Below, piece by piece: positions 13,237 through 64,000 of a stretch of DNA of 64,000 nucleotides. Origin of the DNA: Epithemia pelagica (Eukaryota > Protista > Bacillariophyta); the NCBI GenBank assembly GCA_946965045.2, contig OX337232.1:248001-312000 (forward strand). Direction: 5' to 3'. A model generated the notes under the pieces. The model did not search any database. It saw only the letters and a list, made by a program, of their open reading frames with translations, and was not told where the DNA came from. How positions within the stretch are numbered: position 1 is the stretch's first letter; each line of letters starts with the position of its first letter. The translations under genes were made by a program, and so were the position numbers.

Positions 13237-13827
13237 ATGACGATCCCTGCTGAATTGGAAGAATACTTGTCGAAACTGGTGTTCGTTCGAGAAGGAAACG
13301 AACTTCGTACCGAACAAGTATCGACGCGTACCATGGACATTCTGGAAAGTCACAACCAGGCCCGGTTTCTCGCGTCCTTGGTGGAAGAATACTTGTCTCC
13401 CTTTGGTTCTTGGAAGGGAAAGATGTACGAAGTCATTGGACGCGCGTTGATGAAAGAGGATCTACAGCTGGTGATGGATGGCCACAAACGTTTTGCTTTC
13501 TACGTGCAGTTGGAGAATGTGTCCTTGTTGGAATTGGCCGTTTGGAAGTTTTCCTGTGTTACAATGAAGGACGAATATGACGACACGAATGGGGAAAGCA
13601 CCCGAAGCTATCTTGAGTGGAAAATTTGGGATGAAAGCGGTTGGAAAGCCTACAAGAAAAAGCACTATCGCTGCAACCAAGTTGTCGTAATCATGAATCT
13701 CGTTGTTCCATTCCTCAAAATGAAAAAAATGGACAAAGATGAAGATGATGGTTCTCACACAGCCGGTTCTATCTCCTCTATGACTGGTGGGATTACACTC
13801 GATTCATTCCTTTCCGGTGACTATTGA
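13237..13827 (+). CDS. 'SLLELAVWK' family protein, copy 1 (no zinc finger)
   Basis: LSPFGSWKGKMYEVIGRALMKE...LENVSLLELAVWKFSC...WKIWDESGWKAYKKKHYRCNQVVVIMNLVVPFL. Confidence 0.75.
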   Translation: MTIPAELEEYLSKLVFVREGNELRTEQVSTRTMDILESHNQARFLASLVEEYLSPFGSWKGKMYEVIGRALMKEDLQLVMDGHKRFAFYVQLENVSLLELAVWKFSCVTMKDEYDDTNGESTRSYLEWKIWDESGWKAYKKKHYRCNQVVVIMNLVVPFLKMKKMDKDEDDGSHTAGSISSMTGGITLDSFLSGDY

Positions 13828-14111
13828 TTTTGGTCATGGCGTTTACGCTATTGTTTGGTGTCAAGTCCGATAGTCATGTTCCAATCGTATGTGGTCTCCA
13901 TTGCAACAAAGAAGAAGAAAATCCTTCACAATATTCATTCCCAAGATTCTAGCAACACTGGATCGCTGGAGATCGTAACCGTAATAATAATAAGAGTGCT
14001 ATGGAACTCTTAACAAGGTTCTTTTTACTCGCCAAAACTGGTAGTAGGTATAGTTGCATGGTGTTGAGATTCCTCCGTCTGCTGTGATCCTTATATGACT
14101 CCGTATTATCA

Positions 14112-16911
14112 TCATAAGTACACGGAAGGAGATTCGGGTGTCAGATTCTCTTCCTGGACACCCAAGGACGATGACGAATCGTTGCTCAGTTGATGTTCCA
14201 CGTCAATAGTATCATCATCTTGAGGTTGTGCTTCTTGGAATGTGGAATTGTCGATATTGGTCACGACAATGGCCGTGGAGGTGGTGCTGGACGACGACAC
14301 GGACGCCGTGGTGCTGGTGGTGCTGGTACCGGGTGTGACAGAATGTCCAGCCGGTTCCAGGGTGGCCGTGTTGTCTTCGTAATGGTCGGCGCGATAATAA
14401 CTTCGGGAATGGGGTTGCAAATCGACAATTAAAATCGTCATATTGTCACCTCCAATCCCTTGTGTCGTTCGGGGATCGGCACTGATGATTTCATCCAACA
14501 AATGGGCACCAATTTCCGTCGGTCGTTGGGTATCAATCCGATTCCGCACATAATCGACGGCTTGTTGATTCGTGACACAATCCCAAATGCCATCGCATCC
14601 CAAGATAAAAAATTCATCCACATCCGGGTCGTCCTCGTCACTGTCGTCCTTGTGCAACACGAGTTGGACTTGGACCAAATCGGGTTCGGCGGTAATCATT
14701 TGTTCGGCGGGGGTTTTGTAGGCCACTTGTTTGTATTTCAAATCGCCAATGCTTCGACTGAGATTTAAATTGCCATTGACGCGACCAAAATGATTGACAA
14801 AGCCACCGGCTCCTTGAATGCGTGCCAATTCGACTTCGTGATTGGGTTTGTGATCAAACGACAAGGGAAAGGCCACACCGCCCCGACCCAAAACGGCTCG
14901 GGAATCGCCAGCATTGGCCACGGTCAAGGTATGACCGACCAAAACGGCCACCACGGCGGTGGCACCGGCGTGAATGGGATGATCGGGCAAATTGCACACC
15001 ATGCGGCCATTTTGCCAGAGTGAGGCGGGAAAGTGGGTCGTCTTGGCTGTGGGTGGACCATGTACTTCTTCCGAGTTGGTTGCAGTTGTGGACGAAACAG
15101 ATGGTGTAGAATTGGTTGTCGCACTTTGTTGTTGCTGTTGTTGTGGAACCGTGGTGGCAGAGGTGACATCCTGGTCGTCTTCGGGTTCGACAGCGACAAT
15201 GGGTGGATGCAATGACTGTTGTTGTTGTTGTTGTGGATTGGACTGTTCCGACTGTGGAGAATGGGCCATGTGCAAGAGTCGTTGAAGCATGACCGAGACT
15301 TTGCCAGCCGTGGACCGATTCGGAGGAGGAGGAGTGTTGGCATTCTCGTCGTCATCATCGTCGTCATGAATCTCGTGCGAGTCATTGCTTCCCGGATGTA
15401 CCAGCGCGGAACGTGTGGGAGTCGTGGTCAATCGGCTGGAGGGAGTGGCATCGGGAGACTGTGGCAAATGGTGAAGAACCTGCAAGTCATGAGGATTGTG
15501 ATGCTGGTGATCCTCTTCGTCATCGTCATCGTCATTCATTAAATCTTGATCCATTCGCGAGGCTTCTTCTTGACCCACCACCATGACATCACTGTCATCG
15601 TCCTTTTTCTCCGTCGGAAACTCTGCTTGCACGGCAGCTTGCAACAATTTCAAGGCATCTTCATCGTCCGAGTCCTCGTCTTCCTCCTCGACTCGTTTCG
15701 AGACTGTCGGAGGAAGCGGAGCGTGTGTGGTTGTTCCATTTGGTCCACCCGCGGCCGCAACGACATCGGCTCGTTCGTCAAAGGGCATTTCTTCTTCGTC
15801 ATCGTCGGGTTTTTCCGGTGGACCCGCGGGAGGATATTGCGGTGGATGCGGCCCGGGAATGTGCAAGGCCTCGCGTCGTTCGCCCGGGGTCAATTTGCGG
15901 GTCCGCAAACTCCACAATTCGTCGCTGCCACAACAACAACACAAAAAAATCAAACCACACACATGGCGTTCCCAACACAGTCATTGAATCAATCCAAAAG
16001 AATCGAGTATCATCATCATATAGTATATCCCAGTAATCACAGAGTATCATTGTCATTACCATCCCCGTAGAGAGAAAGCGAGAGAGTATTCATGATTTCC
16101 CCGCCCAAAACACACACACACACAAAACAACAACAACAAGGACCGCAACGAACGCCATGACACACACCCGAAACAAGCCCCAACCACAATTCACACACAG
16201 GAACCACAACCATGTCACAAACCCAGCAAGCAAGCACAATCACAACACGCAGTCAACGAAAAAGTAGAAGAAGCAGAAACAGAAAACGAAAAGTATCAGA
16301 CTTGTGTGTCGTACAACACAGCAAATGTGCCATGCCCCAACAAACACATTAACAATAAGAATCCAACTCTACCAACCAACCGGTTGCCAGAATTCCAAAC
16401 CCGCCGAGTTTCTACCATATCATATATACACACCAGAAACAAGACACACAAAAACACAACACTCGACGTACCGATGCAAGGGATGATCAATCATGCGATC
16501 CAAGGCATGAAAGGTGGCCTTGAGCGCCCTTCCCACGGCACTGACATGAGGATTTTCCTGCTGCGACGACTTGAACCACAAGGACTGTGCTTGTTGTTGG
16601 GACCAGGTCGGTTGTTGGACGAGGACCGAGACCAAGTACAATTGACAAAAGCGGGCCACTTCTGGACCGCCATGACCATCAAAGACGGCAAACACCTTGG
16701 CGGCTTGGTTGCTGGTGTCGTTGGGGTGGTGGTGGTGTGGTACCGAGGACGACAGTCCGACCTGCGCCACGGCGACATGGGCATCTTCCATGGATTTGCG
16801 CCATCCTTGCATATCGCAAATGCCCCAGGCCACGGGCGATTCCTTACAGTCCATGGCTTGACCCCATTCGTGCGACTTTTCCGTCACGGGCGTACTCAAA
16901 TACGTGCCCAT
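14112..16911 (-). CDS. Protein phosphatase 2C (PPM family, PPM1G-like with long acidic insert); exons 16911-16472 and 15924-14112
   Basis: MG.YLS.P N-terminus, MQGWRKSMEDAH, VFDGHGGPEVA, GATAVV, ANAGDSRAV, DHKP, GNLNLSRSIGD, ILGCDGIWD, GGDNMT. 547-bp GT-AG intron keeps frame (CG|C). Confidence 0.95.
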
Positions 16912-17540
16912 ACTGCTTGTCGGACGGCTTGTGGGATTGTCTTGTCAACAAATGTGTGGAGTGGCAGTGGCGACTCGGACACACACCAATGCGAAGAGAG
17001 ACGGCGGCCGACGCAACACCGCTCTCTTGTTGTAGATTGTCTCTCTTCTCTCTCGAGTGCTCTGGTATTCCAATCTATCTACACAACAATGCCGGATGGA
17101 GCCGTAGGCATGTAGGTAGTAGTCGATGAAACAGAGCGAGAGGAGGATGCCGTTATCCACACGGGGCCATGCTCTGGCATACAATTGCAATGCGGTTCGT
17201 TGTTGGCGTGTGTTGCTGCCACTGCGACTCGCGCACCGGACGATGTGTCCGGCGTAGAGACTTGTCTGCAGGCGCGCACTGTGGAACGCGCATGCGCGCA
17301 GTCCCGAGTTCCATCTGCTATCTGCTCTATCCTTTCTACTCCTCCTACTCCTCTAGCTAGTATGTGTACAGTAGGCGTCGTATTCTTCCCACGATGAGAC
17401 CACGTCTGAAGTCTACTCCTAAAAATTCGAAGTACCGCTCTCGACATTTTGTGGAGCTTGTGCCACACACAAAACCACCTGCGACTTGCAATGGACTATC
17501 CCATTCCAATCGTTCCTTCCGTTGGTGTTGTGGTTTGGTC

Positions 17541-18079: not shown

Positions 18080-18148
18080 GCCCAGGGTTTCAAATAGTTG
18101 CGAGAATCCCAAGACGATGACAAGACGATGACAAAACGATTGCGTATG

Positions 18149-19205: not shown

Positions 19206-20093
19206 TTACTTTCCTTTCCGAGACTGTTTCAAATGTACCATAATATCCCAATCATTCCCAATCATTCTAATCTTCTTGTATTCCAAACCATATAACATCA
19301 TACAGTCTTGATGGTACTCTTGAAGCTCTCTGTCTTCTTTGCAAATGTCGATCAGGTCTTCGATATCTTCACGGTAATGTTCGTAGTCACCGTTGTAGAT
19401 ACAGGTATTGATTGCTTGAAGATGCTCAAAATGGAAGTCGCAGACCTTGCAGTGATCCATGTCTGCACGCATTGGTACAACTATTTCTAGTTTGTTGGTC
19501 CTCAAGTGTTCGTAAAACAAAAATCGCGCTGTATATAAGCAACTGTACTTGTACGTGCGTTTGGCTCCTGCTTTTGCTGCTGCCTCGTTATCTTCTTCTT
19601 CTTCCGTTACCGTTGCAGCTGCCTTATGTTCGTTCACAATAGGTGCTTCGCGTACATCATGTTCGGCTTTCAGGATATCGAGGTGTTTCTTGGCATGCGT
19701 AATTGTGGATCTCAAGTTCGTGCCCTTATTCACCACCATCAGGTCACTTGTATCCTGAAATCCCAAACTGTCTAGTTTTGTCCTCAAGGATTCCTTGTCC
19801 ACCATGCGCGGATGAGCCAAAGTTACTTTTCTGTTCCGCATATAATCAACCATGTAGCGAAAATGGAGCCAATCCATGTCAATCGGAATCGGCTCATCAT
19901 CGTTGGGCTGACTCAGGCCCTTTCGCTCCGTCGCGAGTTTGAATAGCTTGGTATCCGGAAAGCGGCTGAGAAGGTCTTGAGGCACATCCACCGAGAGTCC
20001 TTCGACTAAGAACGACACGCCACGATGATAGACTGCAAAGGCAGCCCTACTTGTCGGCATCCGATTTGAAGCCCGTAGGTGGGTTCGAACCAT
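19206..20093 (-). CDS. BTB/POZ (KCTD-type) domain protein
   Basis: VSFLVEGLSVDVPQDLLSRFPDTKL...IPIDMDWLHFRYMVDYMRNRKV...LDSLGF. Confidence 0.75.
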   Translation of the reverse strand: MVRTHLRASNRMPTSRAAFAVYHRGVSFLVEGLSVDVPQDLLSRFPDTKLFKLATERKGLSQPNDDEPIPIDMDWLHFRYMVDYMRNRKVTLAHPRMVDKESLRTKLDSLGFQDTSDLMVVNKGTNLRSTITHAKKHLDILKAEHDVREAPIVNEHKAAATVTEEEEDNEAAAKAGAKRTYKYSCLYTARFLFYEHLRTNKLEIVVPMRADMDHCKVCDFHFEHLQAINTCIYNGDYEHYREDIEDLIDICKEDRELQEYHQDCMMLYGLEYKKIRMIGNDWDIMVHLKQSRKGK

Positions 20094-20789
20094 GGTGTTC
20101 CAGAGGACTCCTATCGAAAACATGAGATTGTTTGTTCCAGCAGAAATGAAGGAAAACTGCGAAACTGTGACCCTGCTGTGGCAGAACTGCTGTTTACCTC
20201 AAAACCTGTTACTGCGCTGTGGCACGCTCCGCTCAGGTGTTGTAGAGTCTGTATAGTCGGTAGAGTCGGTCCAATCTTGTCCATCTCCCGCGAATTGAAC
20301 GTCCATTTTGGATCGACTGTCAAGGTGCTCACGATTCGAAATGCGCACGTTACGTGGAGTGTTCCTCGTATGTCGCACTATAGGAGCGAGTGTTCGTGTT
20401 GGCTTCAGACTTGTTGCCGGACAGATAGATTGTGGCAGGTACTCAATACTACTGGTTCTGCAGCCGTCTTGATTTTCTTCGTGCCGAGGGGTCACCATAG
20501 TCTTGTGGTTCGTTCTGGTGGATTCTGGAGCATGCTCCCTGTCGTTGGATGTACACAATTTGGGTCGGACCTTGAGCGACCAACCAAAAGGGGAACAAAA
20601 GACTAGGAGGCCAAAACCGACGCGTTCTCGACTAGTACCACCCAGTTGGACGATCACCCGAATCTCTTGGCCAACCATGGGAGCATGGCCTCTCGAATCC
20701 GGAGGTCCATTCTTGGTTTTTTCTGACATTCCCCCATTTTTGGTAGCAAGAAAAGGCAAAGCAAGTTCCGGTGTGTTGTCGTCGCGTCA

Positions 20790-22847: not shown

Positions 22848-24485
22848 TTACAAATTGGACGCTTCCAACCAGGTCAACAATTCGTCAATCGTTTCTTGGG
22901 CCTTGCTATATTGCAATTGATTGCGGGCCACGGCGGGCCCCAAGACATCTTCGGCTCGCGTCGCCACTTGCCACGAGGGCGGGGCCAAGAGGGGTGCGGC
23001 ATGACCGGCATTGGCAATGGTCCGTCGTTGCACTTGAATGTCAATCATGGGTCGTTTCATGCGCACGACTTGACCGGCCGTTGCCAACAAATCGTGCAAT
23101 TCGTCCGATTCGTCCAAACCATCGTCTTGGTATTGCACAATCAAGGTATTGCGAGCCCGGTAGGCGCGACGCGCCGCACTCTGGACTTGAGCCGGCGGCG
23201 GACAAAATTCCGTCGCCCCATCGGCCACTTCTTCGACCAAACTGGGAATTTGTTGCAAGGCTTGCAACAAATCGTACAAGACGGAGGGTGGCAAGCCGGC
23301 TTGGGACAGGGCCACGAGTAGAGGATTTTGTGTCGCGGCCGACACGGCTTCCCGGACCGACGACGATACTTGGACGGTTTGTTGAATCCAGGATTGCGTC
23401 GACGGGGTATCCAAAAACGGTGGAATCAGCAACAACCGGACGGCCTTTTGCAAGAGGGCATCCGGTGGCACTTGTCCACAGACTTGGGCTTGGGCCAATT
23501 CAATCCACGTCGAAATCACCTCGGCGCCGTTGCGCCGCGTCGTCGTGGCATTGCGAGCTGCCACGTAGGTAAAAAAGGGTTGGACCAATTCCTCAAAGAG
23601 CGGCACGGCATCCGTGACTTGAAGGGAATTGTAGGAAATCAAGGCATTGGCCGCGCGGGGTGTATCGGGAAACAAACTGGTAATCAAGACATGGAGCAAG
23701 GCACCGGCCGAATGGCCGACGCCAATCACGGGCAAGGCGCCATAGGTCCGGGCCAAGGGCAAGGCGACTTGTTCGAACCGATCCAAAATGGCATCGCACG
23801 TCTGTAAGCGATCAAAACTCAGGGTAAAGGGCGTGGCGACAATCAAAAAGCCCGCCTCGGCCAAGCCTTCCAACAAATAGCGGTACGTGATATGCGGTGC
23901 CGCGCCCACCAAGGCCCCGCCCAAAAAATGAATCACGGCTCGGGGCGCTCCGTCTTGCAAGGATGGTCGCAAGACGTAATTGCCATGCAATTCTTCCCAA
24001 TTGCCCGGTGGAGTCATGCTCGCTGGTTTGGGCACCATCGAGGAGGACGCGGCGGATGTTGGTTTGGAAGAAGAACTGGGACGAGTGTCGACCGGTTCGT
24101 CCTCCGCAGTGGGTGCATTTTTATTGTTATTGTTGTTGTTACTGGACGTGGGTCGGACCGTTGCCGTGGCACCAGTGACAGCATTGGTGGTCGACACTGT
24201 TCGACTCGTCCATGGTTCCTTCTGGTTGTTCTTTCGTAATGTTGGAGTGGAGGTGGGTGGAGTGGTGGTCGTGGCTTGGAGTGCAAGGAACCGCAGTGTC
24301 CATGGATTCTTCGTGGGTGGTCGACGAACCACGACGAGCCCCAAAGCTTGTGGAGGAACCAGGAGATTCAGTTGCACACACACGACAAGGCATACAAGAA
24401 CCACCCGCAGTAGGCATCCAGGTGCGCTTCGGTTTCGTTGCGTGCTAGTCTTGTAGTTGTTGTCCAGCCGTTGAAACAATGCCAT
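22848..24485 (-). CDS. DUF1350 family alpha/beta-hydrolase-like protein, plastid-targeted
   Basis: PRAVIHFLGGALVGAAPHITYRYLLEGLAEAGFLIVATPF, PVIGVGHSAGA, ANALISYN, LIVQYQDDGLDES. Signal peptide followed by a T/R/K-rich transit-like region. Confidence 0.85.
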   Translation of the reverse strand: MALFQRLDNNYKTSTQRNRSAPGCLLRVVLVCLVVCVQLNLLVPPQALGLVVVRRPPTKNPWTLRFLALQATTTTPPTSTPTLRKNNQKEPWTSRTVSTTNAVTGATATVRPTSSNNNNNNKNAPTAEDEPVDTRPSSSSKPTSAASSSMVPKPASMTPPGNWEELHGNYVLRPSLQDGAPRAVIHFLGGALVGAAPHITYRYLLEGLAEAGFLIVATPFTLSFDRLQTCDAILDRFEQVALPLARTYGALPVIGVGHSAGALLHVLITSLFPDTPRAANALISYNSLQVTDAVPLFEELVQPFFTYVAARNATTTRRNGAEVISTWIELAQAQVCGQVPPDALLQKAVRLLLIPPFLDTPSTQSWIQQTVQVSSSVREAVSAATQNPLLVALSQAGLPPSVLYDLLQALQQIPSLVEEVADGATEFCPPPAQVQSAARRAYRARNTLIVQYQDDGLDESDELHDLLATAGQVVRMKRPMIDIQVQRRTIANAGHAAPLLAPPSWQVATRAEDVLGPAVARNQLQYSKAQETIDELLTWLEASNL

Positions 24486-25649
24486 GATACTGTCGTTGGA
24501 CCCAAACCAAAAAAAGCTAGAGTGTGTGTGTGTATGTCCGGATATTCGGTTGTTCCGTTCGTTCGTTCGACCGCGTACTTGTTCTCCCGACAAACGTTGC
24601 CACGCGCAATGAGTGAACCTTCCAAAGACTCTTGTTCTCTGGTGTTGTTTCTCTCGTCTCTCTGCTCAGTGGGAATAGATGCACCAAACAGAGCAAGGAC
24701 AGTGTAAAAGTAAACAAATTAATTAAACACTCGGAATCGAAACGAGATCTGAATCAGCCATGGTTTTGCTGTTCCAACGATTCTTTGGCGGATGGAATGA
24801 CTGACGTGTTGAGCATGTCGTCTGTCCATGGCTCATCCTCTATCTTTGCAATGTGTTGTGCTGCTGGCGTGGGAAAGATCTTCTATTACACCTACTCCTA
24901 GTAGGAGTACCTTCCATGGTCCATGCCCCAGGTATGCTTTCAAACGACAACAAGATGCATACCAAAGTAGGGTGTGCTTGTGTATGGAATATAGAAAAGA
25001 TGTGGCACTCCTATCCTAATACCTACCTAGTAGAGAGTGGCGAACCAAATGTAGATGTGGCTATACCATCGTCATGGCGTCTCGGAAAACGAACGGTATA
25101 CCTTGACCTGCGACACGAGTAGTCCAAGTTCTTGATTCTTGCGCGCAACGAAACACTGCATCCTACCAACAACTAAGGATTCGTGACTGTGGAATTCCAA
25201 AAAGAGGAAGACAACGATGTGGCCCTGTCGTAGAGACGCGAAACAGGAATGTGGTTCTTACTGTCATTGTCATGGCGAATCTCTCCGAAAGCCCCCAACT
25301 ACTATTCTACACGGAGAAGCAAAATTCCAATGGAGTTTGATTTATTTTAGATTGGAAAGCGTGGCTACGACAAGTCCATGGAGAATCTTCCAACTCATGC
25401 TATATCCGTATTGTATACGAGAGAGTCTTTCAAATAGTTTTTTCTGTGTGCTTGATTTACTTTAGTGGTTGAGGTTGCTACGACAATTCATGGGATTGTA
25501 AAAAAATATATATAGATATGAATGAATGAGAATAGAGTAATGTGGAAGACACGGGTTGGTCTCGTCTCGTTTCTTTCTCGTTTACAGGGAACCGACTGTG
25601 TGGGAGGACTGCACCGTCTTTTGGTTTCCGTAAAAGGACCACTTTGTTT

Positions 25650-41842: not shown

Positions 41843-41960
41843 GGGAGCGACCATACCACGATGACAGCACCGCTTCCCGTCTGCTCAGCGAAGTTAAGCA
41901 TCGTCGGGCCCGGTTAGTACTACGGTGGGGGACCACGTTGGAATCCCGGGTGTTGTTCTT
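41843..41960 (+). rRNA. 5S: 5S rRNA, copy C (5' variant GGGAGCGAC)
   Basis: Body identical to copies A/B; the two A>G changes in helix I still pair as G.U; T-run terminator. Confidence 0.95.
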
Positions 41961-50828: not shown

Positions 50829-51041
50829 CTTTTGCGGATACTGTGTCAATCAATCGAACTGCTTGCTGCTTGCTTGTTTGGTTGTTTCAGAAGGGACTGC
50901 GAGCCAACGACTGAGACAACGTTCTAGCCTCTTATTATTCCACACCACACACCAAAGGATCTCCCACACTTTTTGTGAGATGGTCGTCGTCGTTGTCGTC
51001 GTTTTCTTGTTGTTGCATCCAAGACTTTACACAATGACTTT

Positions 51042-51227: not shown

Positions 51228-51978
51228 CCGAGCTATGAGACGGCATTGACTACAGGCTTCTAGCATTCGACCTAGTATGCAATGTCATTGACTATGGTGG
51301 GATTCGATCTAAATTCGAGCTTTGCAAAAATGGCATCGACAGTGGGTTCCAATCTATATTCGAGCTATACGATGGCATCGACTGTAAGTTTTGATGGATT
51401 CGAGACCTATGCGATGGCATCGAATGTGGGTTCCGATCTATTCTAGCTATGCAGTGGCATCGACAGTGGGTTTCGATCTATTCGAGCTATACGATGGCAT
51501 CGACAGTGCGATTCAATCTACTCGAGCTTTGCGATGGCATCGACAGTGGGTTTCGATCTATTCGAGCTATACAATGGCATCGACAGAGGGTTCCGATCTA
51601 TATTCGAGCTTTTGCGATGGCATCGACTGTGGGTTCCGATCTATTCGAGCTATACAATGGCATCGACAGTGCGATTCAATCTACTCGAGCTTTGCGATGG
51701 CATCGACTGTGGGTTCCGATCTATTCGAGCTATGCGATGGCATTGACTGTGGGATTCGATTTTTTTCGAGCTTTGCGATGGCATTGAGCGTGGTTTCGAT
51801 CTTTTCGAGCTTTGCGATGGCATTGAGTATGGGCTTCAATCTATATTCGAGCGTTGAAATGGCACTGAGTGTGGGCTTCGATCCATTCGAGCTATGCAAT
51901 GCCGTCTTCTGTGGGTTTCGATCTTTTATTCGAGCTTTGCGATGGCATCGACTGTGATTGTTGATCTATTCGAGCTAC
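51228..51978 (+). repeat. Minisatellite, ~18 units of ~40 bp (consensus TTCGAGCTATGCGATGGCATCGACAGTGGGTTCCGATCTA)
   Basis: Head-to-tail degenerate units with no unique spacers. Confidence 0.93.
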
Positions 51979-53039: not shown

Positions 53040-53230
53040 CAGCTCCATTACAATGGATCGTTGCTGAAACGAAACCTTGATTCTCCTTCATCATTGCTCG
53101 TCCAATGAGTCCAAAAATTCGGTCCTCAAAAGGACCATGGGGAGACAAACTTTCATGTCAACAGGCGGCATATCCTGAGAGGCGTCAAGTACTTCTTACT
53201 TCGTTGTCACGTTTTCTGTGGTAGACAGGC
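53040..53230 (-). pseudogene. Eroded remnant of 'SLLELAVWK' family (copy 6), closest to 58964-59560
   Basis: LSPHGPFEDRIFGLIGRAMMKENQGFVSAT vs LSPHGPFQNQIFGLIGRLTMEENRGFISTA. Confidence 0.7.
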
Positions 53231-53928
53231 AGACTCGTTATGTGATTATTCGTGTCGAGAGAAGGGGCGAATGATACATTATCAACTTACATGATCCGTA
53301 GATGCAGTTGATGTTAATGCCTTGGACGTTGACGTTGAAGAAAACATGCCTAGACCTTGTATTGTGCAAAACAGTCACAACAGCCAGTCTAATCTTCTGA
53401 CCCCGAATGGAACCGACGCAGACATGGCAAAGGTTTTTTCGACGCCTTATTGTTTCTGCGTGTGGATCTTTCTCCCCCAGGCGCCAGTCGTCTTACCACT
53501 TCAGAGTGTGATAAAATTATGAGCTCCTACCCTAGCAAGGATTCACTGAGAAATAAGATATGAGTAACATGAAAAGACTCAACGACTTGCATATCCTTGC
53601 GACGAGAAACATTGTCAGCAAAATAATGCTAGGAGTAACCGCTTTCAAGAAAATTGATCTAATGTTACAAAACTATACTTCAGTGCCATGAGCCATCTAG
53701 TTGGCAAAAAGCAGATCCCAGTGCCGTAGCACACATGGGTCCTCGGATTCACAATAACAACTTACGTTGTGGAGCAAAACTTGGTCCTACAACAACGTCG
53801 ACTTGTTGCATCAATCGTGCTAACACACTTTCAGAACGCACGCCAGTAACCGATCCTCAGGTTTTTATACAGCTGGTATCCATCCATCAACAGTAAAGTT
53901 TGCCCTCCGTCACAGACAGCCCAAGAGT

Positions 53929-54792
53929 TTATCGGTAATAGTCGTCGTCCTTCTTTCCGCTGTCCTTCTTGCCACTATCATCCTTGTCACCCTTTTCCTT
54001 CTTGCCCGAGCTCTTGTCTTTCTTGTCGCTATTAGCGTATCCCTTTCCTTTGCCCTTTGCCGGAGGTTCCATCTCGTATCCCTTTCCTTTGCCCTTGGCA
54101 GGAGGCTCGACGTATCCCTTTCCTTTGCCCTTGGCTGGAACCTCTGTTTCATATCCCTTGCCCTTACCCTTGGTAGGTGGCTCAGTGTATCCTTTTCCTT
54201 TGCCCTTGGCTGGAACCTCTGTTTCATATCCTTTACCCTTGCCCTTGGTAGGAGGTTCGGTGTACCCCTTTCGTTTTCCTTTGGCTGGAGCCTCGGTTTC
54301 ATATCCCTTACCCTTTCCTTTGCCCTTGGCTGGAGCCTCGGTTTCATATCCCTTACCCTTGGTCGGAGGCTCGGTGTAGCCCTTTCCTTTTCCTTTAGCA
54401 GGAGCTTCGGTCTCATACCCCTTGCCTTTTCCTTTGCCCTTGGCAGGAGCTTCTGTTTCGTATCCCTTGCCTTTGCCCTTGCTTGGTGGTTCCATCTCGT
54501 AGCCCTTGCCCTTGGAATCCATCATCATTTTGCCGGATTCCTTCTTTCCTCGGCTGCTGCTATCATCGTATCCCTTGCCCTTGGTAGGTGGTTCGGTGTA
54601 TCCCTTTCCTTTACCCTTGGCAGGAGGTTCAGGTTCATATCCCTTGCCTTTTCCTTTGCCCTTGGCCGGTGCGGGAGTCGGAAATTCGGGATGCGCCTTG
54701 AGATCACGTACGTTCAAGTCAGTCGTAGAATCGGCCAATACACTGCTGCTAAGGGCAAGCATGAAGGCGACGGAGGCAATCGAGTACTTCAT
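53929..54792 (-). CDS. Secreted Lys/Gly-rich repeat protein (KGKGKGY repeats) with RXL motif; candidate frustule/silica-associated protein
   Basis: Signal peptide MKYSIASVAFMLALSSSVLA; short acidic pro-region ending RDL; >12 repeats of KGKG(KG)Y-(E/T/V)-x-x-(P/A/V)P-(A/T/S); tail DSGKKDSGKKDDDYYR. Confidence 0.85.
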   Translation of the reverse strand: MKYSIASVAFMLALSSSVLADSTTDLNVRDLKAHPEFPTPAPAKGKGKGKGYEPEPPAKGKGKGYTEPPTKGKGYDDSSSRGKKESGKMMMDSKGKGYEMEPPSKGKGKGYETEAPAKGKGKGKGYETEAPAKGKGKGYTEPPTKGKGYETEAPAKGKGKGKGYETEAPAKGKRKGYTEPPTKGKGKGYETEVPAKGKGKGYTEPPTKGKGKGYETEVPAKGKGKGYVEPPAKGKGKGYEMEPPAKGKGKGYANSDKKDKSSGKKEKGDKDDSGKKDSGKKDDDYYR

Positions 54793-55294
54793 GGTGTTAG
54801 GAGTTTGGGGGGTGTTGGGTGTTGGTGTGATGGTTTGCAGTTGTGATGAAACCGGAAATTGTGAGATCAGAGTCGAGGTCGATGTATGGATGGATTGAAT
54901 GCGGACGGGGAACAGATCGCGGTTTGAAGTTTGAAGTATTTGAATCGGAGTAGTGGACATGCCTGCTTTCAACGGAGCATAAGTAATGAACCAACGGCTT
55001 TAAAGAACGTTATGTGGCGTTGCTAGCTTTCTATGTAATCTACAAAAGTTTGGTCTTGACCGGTTACGAGGAACGCCTTAGCTCTCTAGTTGTGTATCGG
55101 AGTGCACCCGGCGTTTCAGTCGCACATTGGGTGATGGACGATGATCATGGATCATGGATCATCTCTCTAGCGAGAGGAAGGTAGATACTAGGAGTAGCTA
55201 GAGAGAGACCAGAGTCATACACCTACTGTAATCTAACAACTGTATCTTCAACAGTCTTAAGTACAAGCCTGCATCTCGAGAGGACTAGCAAGAG

Positions 55295-55588
55295 CTACCA
55301 AGACAACATCACATGATTGGCAAAGAACAATTTGAGTTGAATTTCATCTGCGATCTCAACTGCGGAATCTTGCCTAAAAAGAATCTGTTGCGCGCGCAAG
55401 ACTTCTTTCTCTGTGCCTTTATGGCATTCAGATTCAAGATGATCGCCCCAGTCGTCGGTAGGAATTTGAACGTCACACAAATGACAGAATGACACGTTGC
55501 ATGGACCGTGTTCAAAAGGGCACCAATCTTTGTTTGTAACAAGACAGAAACGTGATGCCAATCCTTTCTCTGGTTTTGGTTTTGACAT
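55295..55588 (-). pseudogene. 5' half (zinc finger) of 'SLLELAVWK' family, copy 7; core missing
   Basis: GPCNVSFCHLC-x11-H-x5-H matches copy 5 (GPYNISFCHMC); N-terminus MSKPKPEKG matches copy 8. Confidence 0.65.
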
Positions 55589-56898
55589 TGTCCAAGGTTC
55601 GTCGAGATGTGATATTTGCTGTCAAGGATCGAGGGACTATTGTTGTTCACCCTCTTACTGAGTACAAGCTGTACAGTGCTGTTCCTTCTGTCTATTCCTC
55701 TTTTTTCAATCTCGTCGAATCCTTTCAGTACAATGTTTGTGTGTCCATGGGTTCCTGCTTCCGTTGTGCCATTCAAAGGAGCATAGGGATCTCGCCCAAA
55801 ACATGAGAGAACGGTCGGTTCTTGTCAAATGCTCCCTCTAGCGACCGAAAAAAATGAATCCGTTGAGGTTCCGGATGATGGTGTCTGAAATTTATGATCA
55901 AGACCAAAATGTTCCAGCTCCGACAACCGTGCGCGCGTCGAGACATCCAACCGTCAATGATGGACGAATCGCGTACACGAATTCGTCGATCGCAACGCAA
56001 CAAAACCAAAGACTTGCCTCGTCCCCTTGGATAAAACACTTGGAAGAAGCAATATAATACAGGTTGATGGAAGCATCCACATGGAAAGAAGACGCATCGC
56101 GCTTCAAACACTGCATCGTCAAAAGTGAAGACTACTCAAGACTGATGATGCATCCGGAACGGGCTGTACCAGAAGAGCTACATGGACAAGATTGTATACG
56201 GTCGGCGAAGCAAATGACAAGCCGACTTGACTCAACCGCAAACCGACGCAGATGTAATTTTCCTTAAAGCAGCAGCAGCATATAGTCTGGCGTCGTAGTA
56301 GAAGATTCGCGGTTACGATGACATTTACAGTCAAAAAGGCAATCAGACTCTCCACCATTTCTTCCTTGACGCCAAAATGCCAAGCTGGTGATGTCGAAAA
56401 TGACTTGCGCCGAAAAACCCATCATAGCTGGGACAAGATCTCACAGTCTCGTCTTGACGAGTATTACGAATGGTTCTTATTGGGGAAAACTATGCTCAAA
56501 ACCATTGTCGTGGTGCAAATGGAATGGAATCGAAATGAGAATGCTGGCACAAGATGGTTGTGTTGGGCGATTGATCACAGCATTTCAGTTGAGCTCAATC
56601 ACAGGAGGCTCATTCTTTTGCTGTGACCCCGGAAGAGATCAAATTGAGTAACACTACGACATGGAACAAGACGAAAGAGAGGACTACTCTTTACTCGTCT
56701 AGAATGTCGCCGTGTACCATATCGTGTTGCATGTTGGTTTCTGAAATGGAGACAACAAAAAAAAACCAAACAGACACAGGCAAGACTTTGGAGGCGAATG
56801 AGTCACCAAGGTTTTCGTATCATAGATCAGCAATCAGCCTGATCTTTTGTTCTGCTGCAGAGTGGGTGTACGTGGCAGAACTTTCGCAGAGGCTCCTT

Positions 56899-57387
56899 TT
56901 ATCGCAATTTTATGATTTTTACAGGCTCCGAGTCGTCAGAGCTCGAATCGTCGGAGTCCGAGTCGTCATCGTCTGGTTTCTTTTTCTGGTCTTGAACAAA
57001 TGGGACAATTGCTTTCATAAGAATCACAACTCGGTTGCACCGATAGTGACTCTTCTTGTGTTCCTTCCATCCATTTTCATACCACCGAGTCCATTCGACA
57101 AATGATTTACGGTCGCCGTCGTTCTGATCCTTGGTCAAACACGCAAATTTCCACACGGCCAATTCCAAGAGCGAGATGCGTTCCAAACCTTCGTACTCAA
57201 GTCGCAGGTTGTGGGCGCGTTTGACCAATGTTCGATCTTTTTCCATGACGGCTCGTCCAATCAGCTCGTAGATCTTACCCTGCCAAGGGCCATGAGGAGA
57301 CAACTCCTTTATGTTTTGGGGGAGAGAAGAAGAACATTCCAACCCAAAATACGATGTAATTCCTTTCTGCGGCTTTGGTTTGGGCAT
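56899..57387 (-). CDS. 'SLLELAVWK' family copy 8 (zinc finger absent)
   Basis: LSPHGPWQGKIYELIGRAVME...LERISLLELAVWKFAC...GWKEHKKSHYRCNRVVILMKAIVPF; D/S tail. Confidence 0.78.
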   Translation of the reverse strand: MPKPKPQKGITSYFGLECSSSLPQNIKELSPHGPWQGKIYELIGRAVMEKDRTLVKRAHNLRLEYEGLERISLLELAVWKFACLTKDQNDGDRKSFVEWTRWYENGWKEHKKSHYRCNRVVILMKAIVPFVQDQKKKPDDDDSDSDDSSSDDSEPVKIIKLR

Positions 57388-58963
57388 TGTCCAAAGTTCT
57401 TGGAGATGTGTTCTTTTCCTTCAAAGATCGATTTTTGTCCAACGGCGTATTGTTGGGCACCAATTTGTGTGTTGTGGTTTACTGTCGTCGTGATTGGCGA
57501 TTTTTTCTCCCTGTCCCTCTTTCTTTCACGTCTATCGTTTCAGTACCATGTGTGTGGATTCATACGTTCCTCTTTCCGTTGTGCCATTGATAAGAGGTCC
57601 AAAGTGGATTTGATGGGTTGTGATTGATTGTCTGTCCAAAAAATGAGCGAAGATTCTTTGATTAGCTCTGCGCCTGCGCGCCAGCGGCTGCCATTCATCA
57701 ATTTATTAGAATACAATACGACAGAAAAGATATGCTGTACTCAATGCAGAAGACCCGCCGCGCGCGATTCCCATTCGTTCAAGACCAAATAACGCACGCT
57801 GAATGGTCACGCTGACGTTGCGCGCGCACAGAGATCCTCGGTGCCATACAATAAAAGTTCGACAATCTTGTGAAGCGAGGACCAAAACCATGTGGACACT
57901 GCTATTCGGCCACTCATTGGCATCATGCGTCTTTCCATTTACTTGCCCTATGGCCTTTGTAGGTCCTGAGAGAGGGAGGCAATCACGGAAATCGTGCCAT
58001 GGCGTGTTGAATCCCATCTTTTGAAGACCTCTACGGGCCGTCATACGTTGGCAACAAACACCTGAAGAATCCTCCTCATCGACTCTTTTTTGGAAAAGTT
58101 GTAAATTGGTGGACCCTTCTCTTCGGTACATGGATCGTCGAAGCATTCTCGGTTGACTGTTGAAGTGCGCCGAAAGAATGTCGTTTCGTGGCGGTATGGG
58201 TGGTCCAAACGAGTTGCCCAGCAACGATCAGCGAGAAAACATGTCCATCGTTCAGGGCAATCAAGAGCCACAAAAGCAAACTATTCTCAAAAGTCTAACC
58301 ATGGAATGGCTCACATTTGTAATGACATGAGGGCGAAGAAACCTATTGACAATCGGAAAGACCAAGCATCAGACAAGAGGAAGCCATGCCTGCTTCCCTC
58401 GACGGCACGATATCACGGATACTTTTGTACAATCTCGTGCAAAGCCATTCAACAATCAATAAAAGACCATGATACAATTACGCTTTATTTCTCCTTGTTA
58501 CAACACAGTGGTTCCGTGTGGAGGCCTCAAATCTGCTACATCACAGCAATCGGATCAGTAAGATTCAGACATTTGCAACTCCAGTCCTGAGCGCACGCAT
58601 TCTCAGTCAGCACAAACCAGACTCCATGAACAAACAAAAGAGATAGTTTGTCAATCAGCGCCTTTGGATGGCCATCATTTGCTACAAGTCACGACTCGTG
58701 ATGTGGTGCAGAGAAGAACGTACGGCCCAGTAGGGGGAACAGACGCATGGTGACCTGACCAACACACAGCAATGCCAAAAGTCTCATGTGCGACTAGAAT
58801 CGGATCCTACCGATCCAGATTAAGAATCAAGCTCAAAAAGTCATGTAACATTCATGGATTTATGCTGGATTGGGATGTTTTACTCCTGCAAGACGCCTGG
58901 TGACAGCAAATTATCCTGTAAAGACCACTTGAGATGCAACCTGATTCTTCACATCGAACCTTG

Positions 58964-59560
58964 CTAAAATTTTGGTTTCATGACTTTCATGTCTTTGACA
59001 AAAGGCACCACTGATTTCATGATGATGACGACTTGGTTGCACCGGTAGTGACTCTTCTTTTGAGTCTTCCACCCATTCTCGAACCAACGGTTCCATTCGA
59101 GACAGGTTCGGGGCGATACACCAGACTTACTATGGGATGCCTCGTCCAATGTAGCACAAGCAAACTTCCACGCTGCCAACTCCAACAAGGAAATACGTTC
59201 TAGTTGTTGGTACCAGGGGAGAGCCATTTTTGCTGTGGAGATGAAACCTCGATTCTCCTCCATAGTGAGTCGTCCAATGAGTCCAAAAATTTGGTTCTGA
59301 AAGGGACCATGGGGAGACAAACTTTTCTTCACAACAGACGGGAGCTCCTCAGGGGCGTCGCGGATCGCAAGCACCGTGTTGACCCGTTGCGTTACTTCCT
59401 TGGAACGTTTCTGGTGGTACCCAGACCTGTTATGTGACTCCATCGTCTCATTTGGTGGTGCGATAGAAACATTACATAGATTGCATGTTCCGTAGGGAGA
59501 GTTGTGGTTGATTCCTTGGACGTTGACTAAACATTTTAATGCTTTATCAGGTTTCGTCAT
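58964..59560 (-). CDS. Zinc finger + 'SLLELAVWK' family copy 9 (intact)
   Basis: CNLC-x13-H-x5-H; LERISLLELAAWKFAC; GWKTQKKSHYRCNQVVIIMKSVVPF. Confidence 0.8.
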   Translation of the reverse strand: MTKPDKALKCLVNVQGINHNSPYGTCNLCNVSIAPPNETMESHNRSGYHQKRSKEVTQRVNTVLAIRDAPEELPSVVKKSLSPHGPFQNQIFGLIGRLTMEENRGFISTAKMALPWYQQLERISLLELAAWKFACATLDEASHSKSGVSPRTCLEWNRWFENGWKTQKKSHYRCNQVVIIMKSVVPFVKDMKVMKPKF

Positions 59561-59786
59561 GCTGCCTTCGGGTCCTGTCGCTATCAATACGTTTGTGAAC
59601 AATCACCGGAAAGCGCGATTTTCATGGAAAAAGGCTATCCAATTCAGGTTGACTATAGTTATGCCTGAAAATGTTAATTGAAGTGACACTATCCATATAG
59701 TAGAGCCTTCACTGAGAGGAGTAGGCCATAGACTTTGATGGAGGTCCTTCCTAGTTATCTCTGTCCAAGTCATTCGTTCTGATTCG

Positions 59787-60263
59787 CTACTCTTTCCCGC
59801 GAATCTTGTTCGACAAAAAAGGAAGGACTGCCGTCAAAATTATGTAGGCTTCCTTACATTTTGCATGTCGTTCCTTTGTCGTTTTCCATCCCTCCAGTTC
59901 CCAAAGTTTCCACGCCAGAAAGGTGTTGTACTCCTCATCCGGAGGCCCATTCGAGATGCAAACAAACTTCCAAATGGCCAGTTCCAACAAGGACAGATGC
60001 TCCATCACCTTGTAGACATCCAGCAATTTTTTGGCCCGTTCCAACAAGGACGCATCATCTTCCATAATGGCGCGTCCCAACAAGGCTGTCACTCGATCGC
60101 GACGAGCAGGGCAGTGGATGTACCGTTTGGTCGACTCATTAAAATATCGACACTGCTGCATTGAAGGCAAAGGCGAGACTGACTCGGCTAAGGGATTGAG
60201 AAGGTCCTGCCAATGTACGTTTTGCTGGCGATCAAGCCTTCTTCGTCGTGGTCGAAACGACAT
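59787..60263 (-). CDS. 'SLLELAVWK' family copy 10 (subfamily B, no finger)
   Basis: RDRVTALLGRAIME...MEHLSLLELAIWKFVC...WKLWELEGWKTTKERHAKCKEAYIILTAVLPFL. Confidence 0.75.
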   Translation of the reverse strand: MSFRPRRRRLDRQQNVHWQDLLNPLAESVSPLPSMQQCRYFNESTKRYIHCPARRDRVTALLGRAIMEDDASLLERAKKLLDVYKVMEHLSLLELAIWKFVCISNGPPDEEYNTFLAWKLWELEGWKTTKERHAKCKEAYIILTAVLPFLSNKIRGKE

Positions 60264-60602
60264 GACGCAAACAACAACACAAAAAATATAATAAAACTAC
60301 CTCTAGAAAACTACTCGAAAAACTGGCGGAGAGGGCTGGACGGGAAGATCTCTGAGAGGGTCTGACCGCCAGCCAATGTCCCCGTGGGAAAACTATCCTC
60401 CCACGGTTCCTCTATCATAACCAAGTGGGAATCTATGACTCTTATGATCTAGGTCGAGTCATGGATGAACGGACCAGACAAGGAAAGAATCAATAAGCTC
60501 TATTAGAATAAAAGCAAAGACAGAGAAACGACATTCTTTGTCATTAGAAGTCGTGAAGTTACCTATGATGTCGTGTGATGTCGTATTTGCCGGGAGTCCC
60601 TG

Positions 60603-61496
60603 TTATTTTGGACCATCGAACAGTGAGGTCAAAAAGATCCGCACTTCATCGGTATCAACGGAAGCTATCTTTTCATGAATCTCCTGCTTTGAGAGAGCGT
60701 TTCTTTCAGATGCCTGAGGAATAGTTCGGAACATCTCCAGTAGCGTTACAGCGAAAAGGTACATATCTATCTCCTCTTTTGCCTCGAAGTCACCATCTGT
60801 AGGATAGTACTTCATCGTGCGTTCTCGAATTGGACCACCCGTTTTGACGGCCGCTCCGTAGGCTCCCAAATAGCAGTCGCGCTGAGAAAGAAAAATGTTT
60901 GATGGCTTAACATCCAAATGACAAAATCCGGACGCATGTAGTGTAGACAATGCCTTGTGCAGCTGCTTGCCATAACGAAGCAATACTTTTGCTGACAATG
61001 GGATCTTGCACTGTAACAATGTCGTTGGATAAGCAAAACCCTTCCGCTGCCATTGCATCCCGTTCCCCGAGGTTTTTGATAATTAACCATTCCACCAGTT
61101 CCTCCTCAGTCGTAAACTTCATGGTCTCATCACTCATCGGGTATGAATTTTCGGCAATTTGACGGGGGTTGACCCTCCTTGTGCCACTTACCGGTTGTTG
61201 TTGTTTGGGCAGCGTCAAAACAAGAGCACTGTCTTCGCTGTGTCCCGGTAGATCTCTCTCCCTCCTTCTTTAGCAGTCACAAAGTAGGGAGACAACGAAG
61301 CACCTGCTCTCAGCTTGTCTTTGACACCGCTTTCCACTTTGAACACTTCCACTCTGGCGGCATCGATTTCGAGTAGACGATCCCGAACAAATTGCTTTCT
61401 CAGATCGTCAACAATAGCGCCGTTGTCGAGGTAAACTCTGGTGCTTAGATGTTCCCCTTTGAAGATCTCACATGTTACCCAAACGTTGTTGCTCAT
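60603..61496 (-). pseudogene. Crinkler-like gene relic: N-terminal ubiquitin-like header, SAM-like segment, truncated protein kinase
   Basis: AIVDDLRKQF..VEVFKV..KLRAG header; after a frameshift LPGHSEDSALVLTLP and FTTEEELVEWL; then a kinase C-lobe with ALSTLHASGFCHLDVKPSNIF and LGAYG in place of D(F/Y)G; N-lobe absent. Confidence 0.7.
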
Positions 61497-61702
61497 GGTG
61501 CGGTGCTGCTCTGAGTGTTAATGTCTTCGACACGAAAAACTGAATGAACAGTTGTGAGGGTGAGGGTGGACTGGCCTTTGCCGCAAAACCTGGCTTTTTC
61601 GTGGCGACTCCCACGTGCGTTGAGTTCGTTCCGTGGTTCTAATCGAAAGAGGTGCTTTCAGCTGTTTGGGCACAAGGACCCATCACTTTTCTCAAGGGCC
61701 AC

Positions 61703-62560
61703 TCACAGCAAGCTTCTATCATCTCTGGGCGACGAGGACACGGGGGACAGTTGTGATGATGATACGGATGATTCTGGGTTGGACTTGCTGCTGAACAACC
61801 CGAGTTTGGCTCCGATTTCCGTGGCTCGAATTTCCAGCCTATACTACAAAAACGATAAGGTCAGCTTCAGATTCATTAAACTAGCAACCTCGGTGAACCT
61901 ACCGCGCCTGCAATGTATCGTTCGTTTTAACTTCCCCGGATGGTGTTTCTCGAGCCATTTTCCTTTGCTTTCAGTCGTCGCTGCTTTGGAGTATGTTCAT
62001 TACATTTGACTTTGTGCCGTTCCCCCATACAGTAGACGTACATTGTCCGACAGAAATGGCAGGACTGCCGTGATAATGATTGGCGCTTCCTTGCAGTGCC
62101 AATGCCGTTTCTTGTTGACTTTCCAACCTTCGGATTCCCACAGTTTCCAGGCCACCAAGGTTTTGAGCGACATGTCCGGAGGAATGTCGGAAACACAAAC
62201 AAACTTCCACACGGCCAATTCCAACAAACACATTTGTTCAAGGATCTTGTACGCTTCGAGGAATTTCTTGGCACGCCTCAACAATGACTGGTCTCGTTCG
62301 AGAATGGCTCGTCCCAACAACGCTGTAGCTCGATCACGGTGAATGTGATAGACGATATAACGCTTGATGGATTCATTGATCTCTCGACCTTCGTCCAGCA
62401 TGCTTTCGCTTCTAGGAGATCCCCAGTTGGACTCTACTGCCACGGCGTGTCTCACACGCGACCGGTCACGACCCCCCTCAAAACGTCTACGTGCTCGACC
62501 AACAGTCTCAGCAGCAGCCGCCGCATCCGCATCGTCCCGAATCACTACCACATTGTCCAT
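61703..62560 (-). CDS. 'SLLELAVWK' family copy 11 (subfamily B); exons 62560-62042 and 61843-61703
   Basis: MCLLELAVWKFVC, GWKVNKKRHWHCKEAPIIITAVLPFL. GTACGT donor, GCTGAC branch point, TTTTGTAG acceptor, in-frame second exon. Confidence 0.72.
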
Positions 62561-63189
62561 TTTGCTTCAACAGAATCCCAAACAACAACAGCTCTTGTTA
62601 TGCGTAACCGCAGAGGATACAAAAGCTGATAGAAAAGATCTCAAATACCGCGACCGAAAAGATTCAGAGTACCTTTTTTGCTAGGCGCATATGCACTATG
62701 CACGTAAAGTGCTCTTGAGACTTACCTCATTTTAGGAAACGCAAGCGTCCTAGTATGATCCTTCCAGTTTTTTAGCAGAACTGTATGGTCTGACGAATAA
62801 ATGTCGTAATCGGAATGGAGCTCCAGATGTTGTCGCGATTGGATCTACCGCCACGACTTGTGGTTCGAGAGTGGTAGCAGTCGTCGTATTTGGGTGGTGT
62901 TGCCGCCCGCCCCAACTATATAATAGGAGTAGGTACTGGGGCAACCGACGATTGCGTCGTAGCAAGGCAACAATCTCCAAAGGAATGGGAAATGATGATG
63001 AACGTACAGGATCAAGGTCACAAATCGATCGACATGCTTCCCCTTCATCTCCACCCAAGGCGTTCCTAACGACTCCCTTCACTCACATCGCATCCCATTC
63101 TAATAATTCTTGCGAATCTTGTCGGTCAGAAAAGGGAAGGACTACTGTCATAATAGTCTAGGCTTCCTCGCATTACACCCGTTCCCATA

Positions 63190-63330
63190 TCAAGGAGGTC
63201 TGGCGCTCCGCGTCGTCGAAAGGCCCATTCGAGATACAAACAAGTCTCTCCATGTCTGTATAACATGCCGTTCCATGTTTTGACCCGGCTCAACACAAAA
63301 GGACCCAAACAAACGGCCATATGGTGCCCG
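63190..63330 (-). pseudogene. Small remnant of subfamily B (copy 12) lacking the central motif
   Basis: MERL-VCISNGPFDD vs copy 10 MEHL-SLLELAIWKF-VCISNGPPDE; DNA block ggcccattcgagat.caaacaa shared with 59945-59966. Confidence 0.5.
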
Positions 63331-63342
63331 ACATGGAACACA

Positions 63343-64000
63343 CTATCTGCCATTACAAGAACACCAAGACAAAACGGAACATTCTGCCTCAAAGAATAGC
63401 TGTGGTGTACGGATACAGTCGTGATTCGTGATGGATGATTCTGTATTGGATTGCTCAACAACCCGAGTTTGGCTCGTAAGTCTGGCTCGTATTCCCAACC
63501 AATGCTACAAAAAAGAAAGAGTTAGCTTCAGATTCCTTAGATATGAGAGTGTGAGTTAGCAACCTTTGTTGAACATACCACGCCTGTCATGAATGGTTCG
63601 TTTTAGCCTCCCCAAATGGTTTCTCTCTAACCATTTTCCTTTGCTTTCGTTCATAAACTTGGAACGTCCGCACTTTATACCGTCTCCAGATACTGTATAC
63701 GTACCTTGTCGGACAGAAAGGGAAGGACTGCCGTGATAATGATCGGAGTTTCCTTGCAATGGACGTGTCGTTCCTTGTTCACTTTCCAACCTTCCGATTC
63801 CCACAGTTTCCAGGCCACCAAGGTTTTGAGCGACATGTCGGGAGGAATGTCGGAAACGGCCAATTGCAGCAAGCACACTTGTTCGAGGGTCTTGTATGCT
63901 TCGAGCAATCTCTTGGCACGTCTCAACAACGAGTTTTCTCCTTCGAGGATGGCTCGTCCCAGCAACGCCGTTGTTTTGTCACGATGAATGGGATAGACGA
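63343..64000 (-). pseudogene. 'SLLELAVWK' family copy 13 (5'-partial), tandem duplicate of copy 11 with an 18-nt in-frame deletion of WKFVCV; exons >64000-63705 and 63504-63343
   Basis: LLQLAV-SDIPPDM vs LLELAVWKFVCVSDIPPDM; same intron position; intron and exon 2 align with 61750-62040. Confidence 0.72.

Follow-up and report, generated by a model that had tools for sequence, protein, structure and literature searches.

A zinc-finger multigene family with a shared helical domain under birth-and-death turnover in the diatom Epithemia pelagica

The stretch analysed here, hereafter the window, comprises 64,000 nt of contig OX337232.1 of the diatom Epithemia pelagica (positions 248,001 to 312,000; G000:C5:248001-312000) and carries 13 loci of an unnamed protein family. 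A typical member has about 200 residues, arranged as a short N-terminal segment, one zinc finger, a long helix and an all-helical domain of about 120 residues. The window represents the larger half of a family that has expanded in one diatom lineage, and comparison of the copies points to a birth-and-death multigene family held by purifying selection, in which a predicted U1-like finger is joined to a helical domain that also appears at the end of leucine-rich repeat (LRR) proteins. On balance we regard it as probable that the finger is a nucleic-acid binder and that the helical domain is a protein-docking or assembly module coupling varied recognition domains to a common partner.

The genome searched comprised 60.5 Mb in 23 contigs, and the window loci were recovered by tblastn with the six intact proteins as queries and by a six-frame hidden Markov model (HMM) scan. 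An initial annotation made from the letters of the window had counted about 13 copies, six of them intact, and all 13 were recovered, the six intact genes having open frames of 158-219 residues with the expected motifs when translated from the proposed starts. Seven further copies had been called disrupted; six are indeed broken copies or remnants, but the one that runs past position 64,000 proved to be open, although an in-frame deletion has removed its invariant WKFxC. Alignment showed the proposed core motifs to be shared by the window copies, and chance is excluded as the source of this similarity because pairwise E-values between copies are 1e-13 to 1e-62, copy E-values in the tblastn search extending to 1e-150. 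The six-frame scan found no extra copies in bases 1-13000 of the window or in the 10 kb past its end. No part of the sequence was flagged as resembling human DNA.

Complete fingers were counted in five window copies (45462, 59560, 36209, 47990 and 55588), the number proposed initially, and all five have the ligand spacing C-x2-C-x(9-13)-H-x(5-6)-H. In an alignment of 71 relatives none of the four ligands varies. Compared with solved structures, the finger profile matched ZFa (E 8.7e-6) and U1C (E 6.3e-5) as well as TUT7, ZNF593, VMS1 and Spindle-E, and these alignments extend past the second His into the following helix. Pfam models zf-C2H2_jaz and zf-met were found in 2 of 55 relatives, at 2e-4. 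In the AlphaFold model the finger forms a beta-hairpin (strands 34-38 and 43-46) followed by a helix from residue 55, with a predicted local distance difference test (pLDDT) above 90. By ligand spacing and predicted fold, we class the finger as U1/JAZ/matrin-like C2H2. The N-termini had been described as modular, with the finger present, absent or replaced. Presence and absence were borne out, but the supposedly replaced N-terminus of the 13237 gene looks like a finger decayed in place: an in-frame stretch from 13045 upstream of this gene aligns to the finger columns, with the Cys/His ligands lost. Elsewhere in the genome, at C13:1039793-1040044 (-), a 1689-aa open frame matches only the finger and first-helix part of the family profile (E 5e-5); the finger module may be used in a much larger protein.

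The helical domain is recognized by the hallmarks LG..W, YE.LE.ISLLELAxWK..C, W..W...GWK..K and VxPFL, often followed by an acidic tail. Across the superfamily, conservation falls mostly on hydrophobic or aromatic residues, the conserved positions being L, L, E, L, A, W, K, C, W, G, W, K, P and F. A first AlphaFold2 model, built from 19 close paralogues, had a second half of low quality (pLDDT 73), and its fold searches were uninformative. The final model, for which the 45462-46121 gene served as reference, was built from 76 diverse sequences and reached a pLDDT of 85 and a predicted template modelling score (pTM) of 0.71, with residues 30-195 mostly above 90. It places helices at 55-88, 95-109, 112-146, 157-172, 179-193 and 195-202 after the beta-hairpin finger, and the 120-residue domain is modelled as one helical bundle.

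No counterpart of this bundle was found among known folds or domain models. Foldseek searches of the Protein Data Bank (PDB) and BFVD with the confident model returned nothing at E<=1e-3, and among 48,161 chains VIA-align scored best (Z 6.9) with generic helical hairpins and designed bundles, a value below the level that the tool treats as meaningful for helical proteins. ESM Atlas searches yielded only weak rows by shape, with the first, weaker model, and only weak C2H2 leads by features, with the whole protein and the core. A core profile found no real match among PDB sequences. The 2025 copy of Pfam placed no model over the core in window copies, relatives or LRR-tail proteins, PADLOC and NCBIfam contained no match to the family, and a literature search by motif strings and keywords found no paper on family or domain. 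The helical domain is therefore one without a Pfam, NCBIfam or PADLOC model, a solved relative or a convincing fold match; the family remains as unnamed as it was first called, and in Pfam, PDB, Foldseek and VIA the core did not turn out to be a characterised housekeeping domain.

Relatives of the family occur beyond this genome. A word-index search matched only proteins of the same species, and an exhaustive profile search based on core alignment A1 (19 sequences) retrieved 346 representatives at E<=1e-3, of which 121 reached E<=1e-10 and 13 reached E<=1e-30. Most are 'hypothetical' proteins of 100-500 residues from metagenomes or run assemblies; the sources that carry a name are two diatoms, Trieres chinensis and Cylindrotheca fusiformis. 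Because the Trieres chinensis match is an MMETSP transcript, at least one diatom expresses a relative. Of 161 retrieved proteins, 85 have the pattern C-x2-C-x(8-16)-H-x(4-6)-H, usually some 100 residues ahead of LLELAxWK, and distant members show the finger in their consensus too. These two observations argue that finger plus core is the ancestral and commonest architecture across diatoms and that window copies without a finger are derived, contrary to the first impression that the core stands alone here. On longer environmental contigs the homologues are single and lie among ordinary neighbour genes, so that clustering is a feature of this lineage.

Furthermore, a profile search drew in LRR_5/LRR_8 proteins at E of about 4e-6. 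A tail resembling the core had initially been ascribed to diatom LRR and ankyrin proteins, and this proved to be homology over the whole core: the last ~130 residues of the LRR proteins align to it with an hhalign probability of 99.2% (E 6.6e-20, 116 columns). A search with the tail profile collected 106 proteins, nearly all with LRR_5 with or without LRR_8 and two of them from Cylindrotheca fusiformis, and sub-threshold ankyrin matches lie between the LRR part and the tail. In the E. pelagica genome the tail profile found no LRR-tail genes and matched only finger-family genes. Proteins with two or more different kinds of recognition domain therefore have this domain as a common C-terminal module.

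To assess constraint, the ratio of nonsynonymous to synonymous substitution rates (dN/dS, omega) was estimated by the pairwise Nei-Gojobori method, in which 53 of 171 pairs were saturated at synonymous sites. Core dN/dS was 0.13-0.52 in the ten least-diverged pairs and about 0.2-0.4 in the remaining unsaturated pairs among those listed. Pooled by region over ten pairs, omega was lowest in the C-terminal core (0.18), followed by the central helices (0.31-0.32), the finger and N-terminus (0.56-0.59), the variable loop (0.66) and the tail (0.76). No region exceeded 1, and the family does not bear out its initial description as diversifying. The ratios indicate that purifying selection maintains the copies and acts most strongly on the C-terminal core. 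Self-comparison of the window showed that old copies are alike only within coding sequence; flanks are common only to two recent duplications (36048-36743 versus 41281-41966, 96%; 61747-62355 versus 63415-64000, 76%). Because the similarity of old copies is confined to coding sequence and dN/dS is far below 1, the copies are constrained genes and not neutral transposon cargo.

Genome-wide, 29 profile matches correspond to about 27 domain copies. Of these matches, 21 lie on contig C5, which contains the window; they form one cluster at 143-181 kb and another at 261-312 kb. Single copies are found on C3, C6, C7 and C17. Two genes encode one finger and two complete helical domains in one frame (L004:71-1336 (-) and L006:4015-5244 (-)); some environmental relatives, such as P0030, have a core-finger-core arrangement. 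In a maximum-likelihood tree the window copies are intermixed with those of the other C5 cluster, and both deep and very shallow pairs occur.

The public assembly ERZ21939226 holds both haplotypes, its contig L001 having HMM scores and open reading frame (ORF) lengths identical to those of C5:140-160 kb. Over window 48.3-57.8 kb haplotig L029 aligns collinearly, with an identity of 89-97%, and it carries an allele of the gene at 56899-57387. Between this allele and the next shared block, L029 has a family gene of full length, with a frameshift that separates finger from core, at a place where the window has only the finger stump at 55328-55594. The core of this L029 gene is 90% identical in DNA to that of 56899-57387 and the remainder is unrelated, which suggests that it arose by partial duplication or gene conversion. 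Just beyond the allele, L029:5056-7599 contains a Copia-type (RVT_2) ORF and an AAA gene in a stretch that did not align to the window, so that the structure of the two haplotypes is not the same around the cluster. At the neighbouring C5 cluster, L001 and L002 are about 96.6% identical over 9.7 kb, apart from a stretch of ~3.7 kb (L001:1795-5487), with a called gene weakly matching RVT_1, that is present in one haplotig only. Across four public DNA runs, window 56800-62600 showed ~100 single-base differences over 5.8 kb, with several small indels, so this interval is highly polymorphic between samples or haplotypes.

Altogether, the family has expanded on C5 by old dispersed and young tandem duplications, and its copies are continually lost through stops and frameshifts, by truncation, by decay of the finger and by differences between haplotypes. 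Deep and shallow pairs, broken beside intact copies and a haplotype-specific paralogue characterize a birth-and-death multigene family, as this cluster had been called from the outset.

Table 1. Family copies and neighbouring genes in the window
Feature	Position	Strand	Evidence or setting
Intact gene, 196 aa, without finger	13237-13827	+	tblastn, HMM E 8e-71
Finger + core copy, one in-frame TAG at 35691-35693, otherwise complete	35616-36209	-	tblastn, HMM
N-terminal fragment, ends inside finger	41278-41445	-	tblastn, HMM, self-comparison
Intact finger + core gene, 219 aa, acidic tail	45462-46121	+	HMM E 8e-92
Finger + core copy, frameshift between 48472 and 48535	47990-48681	+	tblastn, HMM
Decayed fragment keeping LSPHGPF..IGRA segment	53062-53333	-	tblastn, HMM E 1e-6
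N-terminal remnant, intact C-x2-C-x11-H-x5-H finger, without core	55328-55594	-	HMM E 1e-6
Intact gene without finger, 162 aa, acidic Ser/Asp tail	56899-57387	-	tblastn, HMM
Intact finger + core gene, 198 aa, C-x2-C-x13-H-x5-H	58964-59560	-	tblastn, HMM
Intact gene without finger, 158 aa, divergent local subfamily	59787-60263	-	tblastn, tree
Intact gene without finger, 186 aa, same local subfamily as 59787-60263	62000-62560	-	tblastn, tree
Weak stop-ridden remnant, C-terminal core of local subfamily	63131-63247	-	tblastn E 2e-4
Last copy, open 177-aa frame, runs 208 bases past window	63675-64208	-	tblastn, HMM
PP2C gene	14112-15962		between copies
BTB protein	19206-20123		between copies
DUF1350 gene	22848-24593		between copies
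Pyridine-nucleotide disulphide oxidoreductase	42359-43729		between copies
TPR protein	49140-50849		between copies
Three 5S rRNA genes	36617-36735, 40631-40749, 41843-41961	+	Rfam 99-103 bits

The broken copies illustrate several of these routes (Table 1). The copy at 35616-36209 is a recent pseudogene. The fragment at 41278-41445, which retains C-x2-C-x9-H and has lost the last His at the breakpoint, is part of a 96%-identical duplicate of 36048-36743 that includes a 5S rRNA gene. In the 47990 copy the frameshift sits after a poly-Q/poly-T tract and the C-terminal core resumes in another frame. A CAG/poly-Q and poly-T microsatellite occupies window 48440-48535, in the variable loop at the frame break, and repeat slippage is a likely route to pseudogenisation of this copy. 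The fragment at 53062-53333 has stops upstream and unrelated sequence downstream, and the remnant at 63131-63247 was found by tblastn only and not by the six-frame HMM scan. The genes at 59787-60263 and 62000-62560 form a clade in the tree.

Two of the 5S rRNA genes lie ~400 bp upstream of the 36209 and 41442 copies, divergent from them and within the 96%-identical duplication unit; none was found near the copies examined elsewhere in the genome. Because 5S genes adjoin only these two window copies, no general link between 5S genes and the family is indicated. Inside the duplication unit, between two family copies, a 691-aa ORF at 37368-40023 (+) has only a weak AAA_22 match and is preceded by an internally duplicated header (37376-37686 resembles 37682-37974 at 78%). 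Further repeats comprise a satellite at 51297-51977 in which a 40-bp unit is organised into a higher-order period of 163 bp (~17 copies, 77-81% match), and tandem repeats of 36-39, 75 and 114 bp at 54035-54492 within a 347-aa ORF without Pfam match at 53929-54972 (-). The latter repeat unit would have a putative Gly/Lys-rich reading on the minus strand.

By analogy with related fingers we infer that the finger contacts nucleic acid, and by the same analogy structured or double-stranded RNA would be its most likely ligand. The helical domain would act in protein-protein docking or assembly and would couple differing recognition domains, the finger here and LRR or ankyrin parts elsewhere, to one common partner. 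Several observations weigh against this interpretation. Classical DNA-binding C2H2 fingers are matched by the finger profile as well, with comparable E-values (ZNF423 at 1e-7, for example), so that DNA binding would be as compatible with the profile as RNA binding. Moreover, the window copies showed no zinc-finger Pfam match, even below threshold; the U1-type assignment made initially is supported by ligand spacing and modelled fold, but the profile matches do not single out ZFa and U1C from classical fingers. The adaptor role is read from domain architecture only. The taxonomic range is anchored on two named diatoms, the other matches being mostly unlabelled environmental proteins. Pairwise omega, with many pairs saturated, leaves room for positive selection at a few sites. 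Finally, no public RNA run contained the window, and the four runs that were found consist of DNA-like contigs covering genes and spacers alike. Within the docking interpretation, a role in defence or conflict and an ordinary role in nuclear RNA or chromatin processes share the probability roughly evenly.

A more specific alternative is that the family is a conflict or immunity module, in which the helical domain would signal in the manner of TIR or death-fold domains behind LRR/ankyrin sensors for proteins or finger sensors for viral or transposon RNA, the cluster being an innate-defence locus. We consider this possible but unlikely. It would account for a domain common to LRR_5/ankyrin-like arrays and RNA-type fingers, and for an expansion that is lineage-specific, clustered, subject to birth and death and different between haplotypes; single copies among ordinary genes on other diatom contigs indicate that this expansion is recent and local. 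An NTPase gene inside the cluster would also fit, here represented by the weak AAA_22 match only. However, omega exceeds 1 in no region, PADLOC gave no match, the model has no fold likeness to TIR, death-fold or other signalling domains, and LRR-tail genes are not detectable in this genome with the tail profile. The bolder form of the idea would make the LLELAxWK...VLPFL domain a signalling or assembly module peculiar to diatoms, a functional counterpart of TIR and death-fold domains that brings sensors to one pathway, and the C5 clusters an innate-defence or genome-conflict locus. This seems to us more doubtful still; if true, C5 would hold such a locus of a kind undescribed in diatoms.

Another tentative explanation, on a par with the immunity module, is that the copies are ordinary nuclear RNA or chromatin factors, that is, paralogous small ribonucleoprotein (RNP), ribosome-biogenesis or transcription-related proteins that were tandem-duplicated without a conflict role. 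Proteins with U1-like fingers and acidic tails are often nuclear RNA or chromatin factors. The resemblance of the finger to ZNF593, U1C and ZFa, the acidic Ser/Asp/Glu tails of many members and purifying selection throughout are in line with this, and it is common in diatoms for unannotated families to undergo species-specific tandem expansion (PMC7335047). Yet housekeeping factors are rarely retained in 20-30 diverged copies of which many are pseudogenes or have lost the finger, and the occurrence of the domain in LRR proteins too would be unexpected for an RNP core factor.

It had also been speculated that SLLELA resembles the helix of a BC/SOCS-box adaptor. On that hypothesis the SLLELAxWKF helix would be a BC-box docking Elongin C, VLPFL a Cul-box, and the finger or LRR part would present substrates to an E3. 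The window copies do read S-L-x3-A-x3-F, near the BC-box pattern [STP]-L-x3-[CSA]-x3-[AILV], recognition repeats followed by a C-terminal helical box parallel the ASB and LRR-1 proteins, and an intronless Elongin C is encoded in the genome (L020:1405-1728:-). Across the family, however, the BC-box Ser varies between S, A, V and H and the conserved part is L-L-E-L-A-x-W-K; there is no LPxP, only V-L-P-F-L 55-60 residues downstream. In SOCS boxes the spacing between BC-box and Cul-box is roughly 10-15 residues. The domain is furthermore modelled as a single bundle of 120 residues and has no fold match to SOCS or VHL boxes. A co-fold of the core with the Elongin C of this genome gave an ipSAE of 0.01, which counts neither for nor against binding. 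Because the pattern is unconserved, a Cul-box is missing and the domain spans 120 residues, a BC/SOCS-box is very unlikely.

That the copies are untranscribed neutral cargo of one transposon, or chance ORFs, has next to no probability: retroelements and satellites do lie in and around the cluster and nearly half of the copies are broken, but this reading is contradicted by omega far below 1, by flanks that are unshared bar two recent duplications, and by homologues among ordinary genes in other diatoms, one of them from a transcriptome.

Comparison with known systems places the docking interpretation in context. Like U1C, ZFa/ZNF346, ZMAT2 and ZNF593, the family has a single C-x2-C-x(9-13)-H-x5-H finger running straight into a long helix. 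Unlike these proteins, it joins the finger to a helical domain that they lack, comprises 20-30 copies of which several are finger-less, and falls below Pfam thresholds in the window copies. Foldseek gave weak rows to chains of ~80 and 44 residues of spliceosomal B complexes. The diatom BspA-type LRR_5/LRR_8 (and ankyrin-like) proteins with a YERLE.ISLLELALWK ... NVLPFL tail have the homologous ~120-residue domain at their extreme C-terminus; they differ in carrying the LRR/ankyrin-like part where the window family has its finger, and R.SCRI.SGA in place of W..W...GWK..K. With SOCS/BC-box receptors (ASB, LRR-1, VHL, SOCS) the family shares the order of a recognition domain and a C-terminal helical box and the local S-L-x3-A-x3-F, but the pattern is unconserved, a Cul-box is absent, the domain is three times longer and neither fold nor sequence matches. 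In Seminavis robusta, species-specific tandem expansions of LRR, HSF and unannotated families have been described (PMC7335047); the present cluster resembles them in its lineage-specific, unannotated duplicates and haplotype or strain variation, although this family and domain are not named there. Tandem expansion of unannotated diatom families is thus known, and what is new is an undescribed domain in a lineage-specific zinc-finger multigene family.

The domain defined here recurs in hundreds of diatom protein clusters and connects two otherwise unrelated classes, RNA-type zinc-finger proteins and BspA-type LRR proteins. Diatoms are major primary producers of the ocean, and much of their proteome is unannotated. 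For annotators the family is ready to be used as an HMM, and the cluster shows clearly how genes continue to be born and lost, with differences between the two haplotypes of one genome. One module behind two sensor types would offer an experimental handle on how diatoms couple recognition to a partner, possibly in defence.

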